The notes under the pieces: model-generated
What the model saw: the letters and a program-made list of their open reading frames with translations, nothing else
What the model was told of the DNA's origin: nothing
The model's database searches: none
Made by a program: the position numbers and the translations under genes
Part shown: piece after piece, positions 32,509-36,146 of the stretch
How positions within the stretch are numbered: the first letter of the stretch is position 1
Layout of the letters: every line of letters begins with the position of its first letter
From: Tetramitus jugosus
Lineage: Eukaryota; Protista; Heterolobosea
Length of the DNA: 64,000 nucleotides
Reading direction: 5' to 3'
Assembly: GCA_937625935.1 (NCBI GenBank)
Contig: OW569361.1
Location: 310,001-374,000 of the forward strand

Positions 32509-33327
32509 TTAAATGAAGGGGATCACATTTGGCAAGTTGACGTCCTCAAAGAAATCCTTCACCTGCTTTCTCTTCAAAGTGTGACTAAAGTGAATGAGAA
32601 CAAAGTTGGTGTCTGGATGACTCCGGACGATTGGCTCCAAACCCTGCCAATGCATGTGACCTTTGCTGTTTGACTGCTCTCCTTCGAGGAACGTGCACTC
32701 CACAACGACGTAAGGCATCGTGCTCAACACTGGATTTTGTTCGAATACCTCTGGTGTCGTATCACCCAAAAATGCAAACAATGGAACTGAGATTTCCTCA
32801 GAGACATCAACACCACTCTTTCTCAACTCACCCACTTGTCTTCCGCTCATGGTTGCGTACTCTGCCTTCAACTTCTTTCTCTTCTCAAAGAATGCATAAC
32901 CAACACATGGAACAGTGTGGCAACACTTGATTACTTGACACGAGTAGATATCACTGAGTGCAATGATATCGTTTGGTGCCACTGGTTTCAGTGAATAAAA
33001 CTCTCTCTCACCCATGGGACTCTCCACTCCGTCATTCATGTTCTGAGCACTCTTGAGATACGAATAGAGCAAATGCTTCGTCTCCTGTGGAGCAAAAATA
33101 TCAAGAATTTTTCCTCTAGTGTACGTGTAGGGCACATGATAGGAATGATCCGAGTGACAATGCGTAATGAATAGCTTGGATGGCTTGTGCTTGAGTGTTT
33201 CACCTGCATCGAACATGTAACCAAGTTCTGGACAGTAGATGCATGTGGCATCACCTGCTCTCGAATAACCAGTCAGTGTTAACTTGTTGTTCAGTATTTT
33301 GATTGTGGTTGTCGGTTTCTCCTCCAT
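32509..33327 (-). CDS. Short-form (TM-type) tRNase Z, metallo-beta-lactamase fold
   Basis: GYSRAG..TC, FDAG, THCHSDH, HTVPCVGY, KLKAEY (TM-type exosite), GDTT, ECTF, GHMH and LIHFS. Likely start at 33327. Confidence 0.82.
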   Translation of the reverse strand: MEEKPTTTIKILNNKLTLTGYSRAGDATCIYCPELGYMFDAGETLKHKPSKLFITHCHSDHSYHVPYTYTRGKILDIFAPQETKHLLYSYLKSAQNMNDGVESPMGEREFYSLKPVAPNDIIALSDIYSCQVIKCCHTVPCVGYAFFEKRKKLKAEYATMSGRQVGELRKSGVDVSEEISVPLFAFLGDTTPEVFEQNPVLSTMPYVVVECTFLEGEQSNSKGHMHWQGLEPIVRSHPDTNFVLIHFSHTLKRKQVKDFFEDVNLPNVIPFI

Positions 33328-33561
33328 GATTTTCTCTGACGATCGTTTGTTTTGTCTTTGTGTTTTCCAGCAATAAGGGCATTCTTCTTTTATGCGCGAA
33401 GTTTCATGCCCAGCGTCCATGTGAGAATTGAACTCGGAAGTTTCTCGTCGAACTTCAACGTCGACATCCAAATAACTCCGTTATGACGGAAGAGGAAGCT
33501 TCTTAATTGACAGAGTTACGCCATGAAAAAACTCTGATAAATTGCAGCTAAAAAACTTGTC

Positions 33562-34667
33562 ATGAGGTTGTTATGGGTTGCCGTATTATCGCTAAGTGTG
33601 ATACTTCAAGTTGTACAGTCTGGTTTATTGACCTCTCTCAATTTCATTCCCTCTCCGTGTAGTGGAGATCTTGAGGGTAGTCCTTTCAGTTGTGTCACGA
33701 TGCATGGTATTGCTACTTTCACAAACAACGATAATGAAAGGTTGCAAACAAACATCATCTCATACGTGGACACATCCGGTAAAACTGTGACGTTTGAAAC
33801 ACCAATAGGTCTGGATATATCAATTACAAATGTAACATCCACCTTAATATTCCTGAACTCCAAGATAATGTACAATGGATACGAGGAGTATGAACCGGGA
33901 GAAACATGCTCAATCGCACGTAACTACGGCCTGTGTAGAGATCCTAACACTAAGCCTTCAGGTGAAAATAAAATACTATGTTGTTTGGATCGGTCTCCTC
34001 GAGGAATGGGAGGCCACTGTTACCGTAATGATTACACTCAAAAATATTATCTGTATAATGGAGTGTGGACTTCAGAGTCTAGTCACGGGCGTGTTGCTAT
34101 CACACAGAGAGGAAAAGTATCAGAGTTCATATTAGATCCACCTACCTATGTACAATCTATCGCAAACGAGGGAGTGGCATCCATTCATAGTGAATATTCT
34201 GAGTCAGGGGATGCCTTTTATGCACTAGCCAACCGAATTATGCGAGACGCAAGAGATCCTAGTGTTCCCATCACCAACCGAGACAAGTTTTTCGTTGTAT
34301 CCAGCGAAACAGAGTCCTATCTGAATGCTGCAAAATATTGGGCACAGCACTCAACATGTCAAGATCCTCCAGGCAAATTCGCAGTGCATGACATCAAGGA
34401 ACACATTCGGTATGTGGTTTAATATTAATAATTACATGTGAACAATTCACTCACTAACTCTCTCATAACCAAAGTGATCAATACTATGTAGCGAGAAATG
34501 ACACAATTGTGAAAGTGTTCAAAAAATATGGTGCCCAGTATCCAGATTCACTCGAAGTGATACCATCGAGCCAAGACAGTCAACAACCGTTTGGCTTACG
34601 ATTTAAATTTCCATCAGATCTCTCTCTTGTCACTTTCCAAATGTTCAACATAGTCGTAAAGAAATAA
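33562..34667 (+). CDS. Secreted HAP2/GCS1 (fusexin)-like protein, domains I/II only; 2 exons, intron 34410-34474; 346 aa
   Basis: Signal peptide and HAP2-like motif order (C33/C44, TPIGLDI, GYEE, C..C..CC, R, HCYR..Y.LY, LDP, Q..C..PPG, SLVTFQM). The intron GTATGT...CACTAAC...AAG restores the frame through to TAA at 34665-34667. Confidence 0.65.
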
Positions 34668-34673
34668 ATGCGT

Positions 34674-35513
34674 TCAATCATCCGGAGGAGGTAACAATAA
34701 TTGTGTGGCCTTGATTTCTGTTTCCGTCAGCTCTGGATGCCAAAAATCAACCAACAATACAATTCTATCCATTACAGCAGCACTGTTTGTGTCATCACTC
34801 TTAAATATAACCTCATGATTAAACGTGTCATCAAATATCATAGCTTCACCTTCAACATATGTTCGCCACTCATCAGCAACTCGAATCTTCACCTCCTGAT
34901 GGGAATCAACTTGCAAGGGAAGTTGTAATCGAAGCTTAAGATTGCACACACCACAGTGAGGAGTAATGTGAGTTCCTGGCTTGATTCTACTGAAATAAAC
35001 GTAGCCAATTCCACTGCCCGTACACAGTGCATGATTTGGGAATGCTTCTTGCAAAATTCTCCAAGTCTCAGGACACAGTGCAATCCTTTCATGGTCAACA
35101 GCACCTTGGTTCACCAAGTAGAACGCATTCCATGTACCCTCCTTGTTTGTCGAGCTAAATATTCGATCCAGTTTGGGTCCTGATAGTAATTCATCATCAT
35201 TCTCTTTCAACGTGTCAGAATCGCCATAAAAAATATGTTGACACTCATGTTTCATGAGTGCAAGATTGTTTGGATCCTGCAAAGTGTTGAGCGCATGAGC
35301 GTACATAGGGTGCTGCTGCTCATCAAAGAAGGGAACAGAAGCAATCTCAGGATAGATGAAAAGACTTGGTCTCTGACAGGGATGTTTCTGTTGTTGGTCA
35401 ATCAGAAGTGCTCGATTGCACTCCGACATGGCAGTCACTGTTCGAAACAAACGAGGAGGTCCACTCAGGAGCAACTCATTCAACAATTCTTGATCACTCT
35501 CAGATAAGTCCAT
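34674..35513 (-). CDS. Aspartyl/asparaginyl beta-hydroxylase-domain dioxygenase
   Basis: CPETW, YFSRIKPGTHITPHCG, LRLQLPL, FDDTFNHEV and RIVLLVDFWHPEL. Confidence 0.88.
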   Translation of the reverse strand: MDLSESDQELLNELLLSGPPRLFRTVTAMSECNRALLIDQQQKHPCQRPSLFIYPEIASVPFFDEQQHPMYAHALNTLQDPNNLALMKHECQHIFYGDSDTLKENDDELLSGPKLDRIFSSTNKEGTWNAFYLVNQGAVDHERIALCPETWRILQEAFPNHALCTGSGIGYVYFSRIKPGTHITPHCGVCNLKLRLQLPLQVDSHQEVKIRVADEWRTYVEGEAMIFDDTFNHEVIFKSDDTNSAAVMDRIVLLVDFWHPELTETEIKATQLLLPPPDD

Positions 35514-35582
35514 TCTGCAGAGGCAAGTGTTTGGCGTATTGTCGGAACGAGTGGAAAATTAGTCGGACCATTTTTTGTTGAA

Positions 35583-35645
35583 GAAGTTCATTGAACCTCC
35601 TGGTTGACTAGTATCAACCGCATTATTTCGATGTGTTAGAAAAAT
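35583..35645 (+). promoter_or_regulatory. Candidate ribosomal-protein promoter elements upstream of RPS14
   Basis: GAAGTTCATT, CCWGGTTGACT and AGAAAAAT are also present upstream of RPL5 (49036-49094). Confidence 0.4.
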
Positions 35646-35690: not shown

Positions 35691-36146
35691 ATGTCATCCA
35701 AGAAGGGTAAGGTCAAAAAAGAGCAGGAAAAGCTGTACTACGGTCCACAAACCAAGCAAGACGAACTTGTCTTCGGTGTTGCTCACGTGTACGCTTCATT
35801 CAACAACACTTTCATCCACGTGACTGATATGTCCGGCATGGAAACCATCATTAGAGTTAACGGTGGTATGAAGGTTAAGGCTGACAGAGATGAGTCTTCC
35901 CCATACGCTGCTATGATGGCTGCTCAAGACGTCGTCGCCAGATGCAAGGAACTCGGAGTTAACGCACTACACATCAAGCTCAGAGCTACTGGTGGTGTTA
36001 TGAGCAAGACCCCAGGTCCAGGTGCTCAATCCGCTTTGAGAGCTTTGGCTCGTGCTGGTATGAAGATCGGAAGAATTGAAGACTCAACTCCTGTTCCTCA
36101 CGATTGCACTAGAAGAAAGGGTGGTAGAAGAGGTCGCCGTCTCTAA
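35691..36146 (+). CDS. RPS14: 40S ribosomal protein S14 (uS11)
   Basis: [37 protein letters not shown] and [10 protein letters not shown]. Confidence 0.98.

Follow-up and report, generated by a model that had tools for sequence, protein, structure and literature searches.

A family of predicted secreted, anchorless HAP2-like proteins comprising fusexin domains I and II only

To our knowledge, every class II fusogen described so far, whether a viral glycoprotein, HAP2, EFF-1/AFF-1 or the archaeal Fsx1, is anchored in the membrane and carries a domain III, and the HAP2 paralogues that we know of are likewise membrane proteins. When domain III folds back, it delivers the power stroke of fusion. 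Here we analyse a gene at positions 33562-34667 of a 64-kb stretch of Tetramitus jugosus DNA, referred to as the window (positions 310001-374000 of contig C18 of genome G000, a 26.35-Mb eukaryotic assembly of 56 contigs). Its predicted product resembles the first two domains of HAP2 and appears to end there. The best explanation overall, to which we assign a probability of about 0.6, is that the gene encodes a secreted, disulfide-stabilised fusexin made up of domains I and II only, with HAP2 as its closest structural relative, which serves as an extracellular binding module.

Several described systems provide the background for this comparison. In HAP2, which has 16 conserved cysteines, E126 on strand b is salt-bridged to R185 in the cd loop, and a cysteine-bounded segment spanning residues 170-204 (C170-C204) carries both R185 and a hydrophobic F192/W193 loop (Fedry et al., PMC5332557). 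The tip of domain II in EFF-1 is without a hydrophobic fusion loop, and fusion can be modulated with soluble forms of the EFF-1 ectodomain and of domain III (PMC8784728). Constructs of the alphavirus E1 domain I/II core are cited as binding to fusion intermediates (Liao and Kielian 2005, cited in PMC5332557). In archaeal Fsx1, domains I and II extend from D25 to A335 and domain III from P350 to Q453 (Moi et al., PMC9259645).

The gene in the window starts with an ATG at 33562 and has two exons on the plus strand, of 848 and 193 nucleotides (nt), which together give 346 codons and a stop. Exon 1 (33562-34409) encodes residues 1-282 and two bases of codon 283, and contains all eight cysteines (residues 33, 44, 116, 125, 140, 141, 153 and 266); mapped from the structural model of a homologue described below, it would comprise the N-terminal strands of domain I and the whole of domain II. 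The spliceosomal intron that follows (34410-34474; 65 nt, phase 2) starts with a GTATGT donor at 34410 and closes with an acceptor AG at 34473-34474. It contains a CACTAAC sequence resembling a branch point and, at 34420-34422, an in-frame TAA. Exon 2 (34475-34667) supplies the last 64 residues and the TAA stop, and corresponds in the model to a short helix plus the strands that close domain I. A signal peptide is predicted at approximately residues 1-20 (33562-33621), with cleavage probably after VQS; residues 3-24 are the Kyte-Doolittle maximum of the protein (1.88), residues 2-25 are helical in a single-sequence model, and the homologues have equivalent hydrophobic N-termini. No second membrane segment was found in the window protein, where the remaining Kyte-Doolittle maximum, in exon 2, is 1.03. 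The C-terminus maps to a domain I beta-strand that ends in charged residues. Beyond the gene's own stop there is a spacer of six bases (34668-34673) and then the minus-strand stop codon of a convergent gene (34674-34676), leaving no space for further exons between the two. An initial annotation of the locus had described two exons, a signal peptide, eight cysteines, a gap of 11 residues between the CC and HC motifs, and a neighbouring stop 6 base pairs (bp) away that left no room for a domain III, a transmembrane helix or a tail, and all of these features are present in the sequence.

An exhaustive HMMER protein search of 1.84 billion representatives, in which, as in every search reported here, exons 1 and 2 were queried as separate sequences, returned 13 true relatives (P0002-P0014; E 7e-43 to 1e-4). 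All 13 are of 378 residues or fewer, family sizes being about 285-380 residues, and no relative longer than 378 residues was found among those 1.84 billion representatives. The weakest match of the search, P0015 (881 residues), is a bacterial leucine-rich repeat (LRR)/DUF5018 protein and was rejected as a relative. Other searches were less productive: in a word-based protein search exon 1 recovered only the protein itself and the family profile only two known members, and feature searches of the ESM Atlas with exon 1 and P0007, together with an Atlas shape search, gave nothing usable.

Alignment of the window protein with its 13 homologues reveals eight conserved cysteine columns, the exception being P0005, which is without both N-terminal cysteines, as would be expected if these two pair with each other. 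N105, R147 and G150 are invariant in all 14 members, and E108 is Glu in 13 of them and Asp in the other. The conserved motifs follow in the order Asn, Glu, L-C-C, Arg, Gly and H/Y-C, which correspond in the window protein to N105, E108, C140-C141, R147, G150 and H152-C153. As judged from the alignment, this pattern of conserved residues is not due to chance. Two residues that the initial annotation had singled out as candidates for conservation, the Glu of GYEE and the Arg of SPRG, are E108 (13/14) and R147 (14/14), whereas the Q..C..PPG motif that it had also listed is not conserved in the family, where only the Cys is kept.

The predicted gene model is also confirmed by homology. The full-length members P0005, P0006, P0007, P0010, P0012 and P0013 are intronless (P0008 is N-terminally cut), and beyond the point at which exon 1 ends they continue with a D-Q-aromatic-aromatic motif and around 60 further residues; exon 2 opens with the same motif, aligns directly after exon 1 to the C-termini of these homologues and ends at the same column. 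When the family profile was compared with a six-frame translation of the genome it matched exon 1 at E 7.8e-88 and exon 2 at E 5.5e-9 (profile positions 278-337). No paralogue was found in the genome by single-sequence or profile search, and the gene is single-copy. The closest relative, P0002 (contig L010), which is 33-37% identical to the window protein, is interrupted by a short GT..AG intron whose codon position and phase are the same, and the exon beyond it is homologous to exon 2. The P0002 gene stops 18 nt from a different convergent gene, and the P0007 gene has opposite-strand genes 3 nt downstream in two contigs. Since the same end recurs in several genomic contexts, the family as a whole has a short anchorless C-terminus, which is no accident of annotation.

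The fold was obtained on the intronless homologue P0007 (325 residues) using AlphaFold2 and a 16-row alignment, A3, in which both window exons were included as separate rows. The resulting model has a mean predicted local distance difference test (pLDDT) score of 85.9 and a predicted template modelling (pTM) score of 0.76, and all five models reach a pLDDT of at least 82.7. When it was compared with the PDB using Foldseek, HAP2 occupied the top eight rows (E 1.5e-11 to 2.5e-9; query template modelling (TM) score 0.50-0.61), with structures from Arabidopsis (5OW3), Cyanidioschyzon (7S0K) and Chlamydomonas (6DBS, 5MF1 and 6E18), and the next matches were to phlebovirus, orthobunyavirus, hantavirus and flavivirus fusion proteins and to EFF-1. 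VIA-align gave Z scores of 13.3-15.1 for HAP2, with 265-281 residues aligned, and lower values for Fsx1 (9.9), a T. cruzi HAP2 fragment (9.8), EFF-1 (9.4) and viral Gc proteins (9.0 or less). An exhaustive scan of 48,161 PDB representatives, made independently of Foldseek, returned the same order; all chains with Z of 5 or more were class II fusion proteins, and the best unrelated chain scored 4.5. Sequence identity in the structural alignments to HAP2 is 10-14%. On the strength of these models the family very probably has the fold and architecture of a class II fusogen (fusexin), in which two insertions form an elongated domain II on a beta-sandwich domain I, with HAP2 as its nearest structural relative by both Foldseek and VIA-align, in keeping with the fusexin fold that had first been proposed for the window protein.

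The extent of the match indicates which part of a fusexin is represented. The P0007 model is matched from its first strand through its last residue, and the corresponding ranges are 26-337 in Fsx1, 1-288 in alphavirus E1, 693-1018 in the Rift Valley fever virus (RVFV) Gc protein, 26-382 in Arabidopsis HAP2 and 23-457 in Chlamydomonas HAP2. Domain III of alphavirus E1 starts near residue 292. In both Fsx1 and E1 the aligned range ends at the limits of domains I and II, in agreement with the initial proposal that the protein stops about where domain I ends. As modelled, the family consists of domains I and II and ends where the linker to domain III would begin. Exon 2 maps to the model strands 293-300, 303-309 and 314-321, which close domain I, and to a short helix. 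The immunoglobulin (Ig)-like domain III is absent, the protein ending at the last domain I strand and the C-terminus of the family lying at the same column; a stem and membrane anchor are likewise absent, there being no hydrophobic segment after the signal peptide.

The conserved region at the tip of domain II (33871-34020) covers residues 104-153, as counted by columns over the 14 family members. The conserved Glu lies at the end of a long strand running to the tip, and is followed by a Cys-Cys mini-loop of 9-10 residues, a polar stretch rich in Pro, Ser, Thr and Asp, and a strand ending in L-C-C. Next comes a segment containing the invariant Arg before G-x-G-x-H-C, which ranges from 10 to 21 residues in the family but is mostly 11. 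In the window protein this candidate cd loop (33985-34017) comprises the 11 residues between C141 and C153, and is polar and Gly-rich, against the 34 residues of the HAP2 segment; in the P0007 model it is an eight-residue loop between two strands (loop 133-140). The residue after R-G is variable (M, T, N, V, Y, P, Q or L) and mostly polar. The fusion-loop segment of HAP2 is, by this comparison of sequences, reduced to a stub in the family, and the correspondences with HAP2 drawn in the initial annotation are reasonable. E108 and R147 occur in the same order relative to the cysteine framework as E126 and R185 of HAP2, a correspondence of sequence order. Two matches to PF10699, the Pfam family of HAP2, also fall in this Cys-rich tip region, although both are below the cut-off of 27.4 bits: residues 80-148 of P0008 match profile positions 122-182 at 19.5 bits, and residues 112-246 of P0007 match positions 120-228 at 15 bits.

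Like HAP2/GCS1, the window protein has a signal peptide, a Cys-rich domain II tip, a conserved Glu before it and an Arg between two cysteines. It differs in size, having approximately 346 residues whereas crystallised HAP2 chains comprise 442-529 and the HAP2 ectodomain alone is far longer; in the absence throughout its family of an Ig-like domain III, a stem, a transmembrane helix and a cytoplasmic tail; in its eight conserved cysteines, as against 16; and in falling below the PF10699 threshold (27.4 bits). With the Pfam threshold, the 16 cysteines, domain III and the transmembrane helix all lacking, we do not class the window protein as HAP2 proper, and it is better described as a predicted HAP2-like half-fusexin. 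EFF-1/AFF-1 (4OJC, 4OJD and 4OJE) share the class II fold (Z 8.8-9.4), and EFF-1 resembles the window family, as far as the candidate cd loop of the latter shows, in being without a hydrophobic fusion loop at the tip; however, EFF-1 has a domain III, a stem and a transmembrane anchor, mediates bilateral fusion and is structurally more distant than HAP2. In the case of archaeal Fsx1 (7P4L), domains I and II align over residues 26-337 (Z 9.8-9.9), but the protein has in addition domains III and IV and three transmembrane helices, and the secondary structure and disulfides of its domain II are different. A natural anchorless fusexin of domains I and II only was not found in the limited literature on fusexins that was searched, and within those limits the family is a new architectural variant within the known fusexin superfamily.

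The initial annotation had pointed to a search of the genome for a full-length HAP2. A search with PF10699 found one place, on contig C48 (29.4 bits against the cut-off of 27.4; profile positions 339-463), and the protein encoded there is an anchored protein with epidermal growth factor (EGF) repeats. The locus, C48:60789-67044, contains two overlapping frames (L005:290-1408 and L005:1392-6545). The PF10699 match lies at residues 234-366 of a 1718-residue frame (28.6-29.9 bits, and confirmed on the excised protein), which also has some 13 EGF/teneurin-type repeats, one transmembrane helix near residues 1430-1457 and a tail of approximately 260 residues. The upstream frame carries a signal peptide, and the two probably join via a short intron near L005:1392-1411, which would give a protein of more than 2000 residues. 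Judging by its profile position and a cysteine pair, the PF10699 stretch looks like domain III. Just upstream of it, residues 5-192 align with the window family profile in hhalign (E 2e-4, probability 46%), and the alignment is collinear through the CC, Arg and HC positions; hhalign against the upstream frame gave nothing, and BLASTP of exon 1 against the C48 protein detected no significant similarity. The C48 protein aligns with the window family but differs from it in its EGF repeats, anchor and tail and in missing several of the family cysteines. It seems, from these profile comparisons, to be a divergent anchored fusexin-like protein remotely related to the window family.

Evidence that the window gene is expressed and constrained comes from soil metatranscriptomes, in at least five studies of which it is present in RNA libraries. 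Strains were compared by aligning contigs of four RNA libraries, from four studies, over 33300-35600. These contigs cover the gene from 33571 on and leave the upstream intergenic stretch 33377-33530 uncovered, which indicates RNA rather than contaminating DNA; in an oligo-dT library, the 3' parts of the two convergent genes are both covered. All ten strain variants in exon 1 and two of the three in exon 2 are synonymous, a total of 12 synonymous against one non-synonymous, compared with 12 against six in the neighbouring convergent gene. The sole indel among strains, an additional A after 34464 that is carried by two libraries, is inside the intron. Purifying selection on both exons in their predicted frames is clear. 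The initial annotation would have been abandoned had there been no fusexin fold, had transcripts spliced onward to domain III or transmembrane exons, or had the gene been untranscribed or neutrally evolving. What was found is a predicted fusexin fold, no room for such downstream exons (the intronless relatives end alike) and a gene with RNA coverage and mostly synonymous variants.

Several observations nevertheless count against a secreted fusexin of domains I and II. No Pfam family was matched by exon 1 or exon 2 at E up to 1, and sequence searches of the PDB did not return HAP2, whether the query was exon 1, P0008 or the family profile. The model was built on P0007, whose identity to window exon 1 is 22% across alignment A3 and 30% by local phmmer matching; the alignment behind the fold is shallow, and AlphaFold2 was trained with class II structures among its examples. 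Folding exon 1 as a single sequence gave an unusable AlphaFold2 model (pLDDT 37.6). A semi-conserved aromatic residue in the C116-C125 mini-loop could still touch membranes, and the initial description of the protein as fusion-loop-less therefore stands for the CC..HC segment but not for this mini-loop. No spliced joint is present in the RNA contigs, and all of those that cross 34410-34474, from four runs including an oligo-dT run, retain the intron, although such contigs are strandless and keep the dominant form only, so that splicing is neither shown nor excluded by them. The unspliced message would give a product of 286 residues without the last strands of domain I. Finally, presence in at least five soil metatranscriptome studies and strong purifying selection are atypical of fertilisation proteins of the gamete-restricted, fast-evolving kind. 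A prediction of the homotrimer, with three copies of P0007 residues 22-325, had a score of 0.00, with the alignment unused and the fold uncertain, and speaks neither for nor against trimerisation.

The main alternative is that the domain I/II scaffold has been re-used for an unrelated extracellular role, the fusexin fold being kept only as a stable, elongated beta scaffold in an adhesive, wall, cyst or matrix component or in a carbohydrate or surface binder. We regard this as possible, if on the unlikely side. It would sit well with several observations: RNA libraries from at least five soil studies contain the gene, on contigs that it shares with a housekeeping-type neighbour; there is a single copy, which evolves under strong purifying selection in the species; and the product has no hydrophobic cd loop and no demonstrated partner. 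However, the near-invariant Glu, the invariant Arg and the cysteine framework have been retained at the tip of domain II, which matters for the fusogen function of HAP2, and there is an anchored relative in the same genome.

The retained intron raises the further idea that the functional product is the unspliced form of 286 residues ending in YVV, exon 2 being unused or intron retention acting as a regulatory switch. No joint interrupts 34410-34474 in any of the RNA contigs of the four runs, oligo-dT among them, and gene callers recorded an unspliced product of 284 residues (P0001). We nonetheless consider this improbable, because exon 2 matches the C-terminus of the family at E 5.5e-9, the site and phase of the intron are conserved in a relative with 33-37% identity, two of three variants in exon 2 are synonymous and it accounts for three domain I strands in the model, and because RNA contigs drop minor forms and cannot show absence.

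It is very unlikely that the gene is a fragment of a captured viral class II envelope glycoprotein, that is, an endogenous viral element. Many viral glycoproteins do match the model at Foldseek E 1e-10 to 1e-8, but HAP2 is ahead of them both in Z score (13-15 against 9 or less) and in query TM score (0.50-0.61 against 0.46 or less for the viral models in BFVD). In addition, the gene has a conserved spliceosomal intron, housekeeping neighbours, a single copy and orthologues in other genomic contexts, and such weak sequence links as exist are with PF10699 and with the anchored protein encoded by the genome itself. There is a similarly slight chance that the protein is not a fusexin at all and that the model is an AlphaFold artefact concealing a lineage-specific, Cys-containing secreted protein of another fold, such as a C1q/TNF-like jelly roll. 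The only PDB sequence matches of the family profile were to adiponectin C1q (E 0.0075 for a triple-repeat chain, 1.3 for a single domain), and the alignment is shallow and the single-sequence model failed, as noted above. Against this, all five models have a pLDDT of at least 82.7, the sub-threshold matches to the HAP2 Pfam family are in the expected region, no C1q/TNF chain is among the listed matches (689 chains with Z of 2 or more), and every match with Z of 5 or more is class II; the adiponectin match is spurious, and is ruled out by the exhaustive structural search. That the gene is a genuine full-length HAP2 with missed domain III and transmembrane exons, for which nothing beyond the fold speaks, can be dismissed, given the spacing of only 6 bp between the stop and a convergent gene strongly matched in Pfam (34674-35513 on the minus strand; Asp/Asn beta-hydroxylase family, PF05118, E 1.2e-36), intronless homologues that end alike with opposite-strand genes 3-18 nt away, and no relative longer than 378 residues in the exhaustive search.

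With regard to the surroundings of the gene, the window has approximately 41% G+C, short introns and closely packed genes, and no light-harvesting-protein genes were found in the genome, which suggests that the organism is not photosynthetic. The upstream divergent neighbour (32509-33471, minus strand) has a weak match to a metallo-beta-lactamase fold (PF12706, E 0.0084). Retention of the intron in all four libraries may mean that splicing is inefficient or regulated, or only that the assembler chose this form. Single RNA contigs span both convergent genes (34099-35469), from the 3' part of the gene analysed here to the 5' part of the hydroxylase-family gene, and with just 6 bp between their stops the convergent transcripts very likely overlap at their 3' ends. 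One contig, from run X3, has a depth of about 386 over 35440-35600, compared with 4-8 nearby; it starts around 250 nt upstream of a ribosomal protein S14 open reading frame (35691-36146) and overlaps the 5' end of the hydroxylase-family gene, pointing to a long 5' leader, or else an exon further upstream, for the ribosomal-protein gene. A search with a degenerate motif (G.HC.RYDY...Y..Y) gave chance matches to four bacterial Tyr-rich peptides on soil metagenome contigs from JGI (L006-L009). These represent a conserved small bacterial secreted peptide with DDRGF(H)RD repeats and a Tyr-rich C-terminus, GYCSY, encoded next to a citrate synthase-like gene and unrelated to the fusexin family.

If the window protein is a secreted fusexin of domains I and II, it would be unable to drive fusion by itself, having no anchor, no fold-back domain and, judging by the cd-loop segment, no hydrophobic, membrane-inserting loop, and would most likely act outside the cell as a binding module. 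In the mechanism that we prefer, it would bind to an anchored protein of fusexin type, for which the EGF-repeat membrane protein encoded on C48 is a candidate, and by occupying interfaces of the domain I/II core would restrain or time cell-cell fusion. The idea of a soluble regulator is the most attractive one, since engineered soluble class II pieces inhibit or stimulate fusion and EFF-1 works without a hydrophobic tip. The resemblance to such fragments, which are anchorless pieces that bind intermediates and inhibit or modulate fusion, has its limits, in that they are laboratory constructs whereas the window family is natural, conserved, intron-bearing and under purifying selection. As a fusion regulator or decoy the protein is only tentatively proposed, and the odds do not favour it. 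The more specific version, a natural soluble half-fusexin that caps or co-assembles with an anchored fusexin core and so sets the timing or the partner of fusion, is more doubtful still.

Were that version true, the protein would be an endogenous dominant-negative or priming factor for class II fusion, conserved in a lineage of soil protists. Soluble regulators of class II fusion have so far been known only as engineered fragments, and the family would show either a second, non-fusogenic use of the fusexin scaffold or a natural soluble regulator of this kind. A secreted protein of 36 kDa would also be an experimentally tractable handle on how HAP2-type fusion is restrained or timed. For reconstructions of fusexin evolution the family may provide a new branch, and through it a membrane protein encoded in the same genome has come to light as a candidate for a divergent HAP2-like protein.

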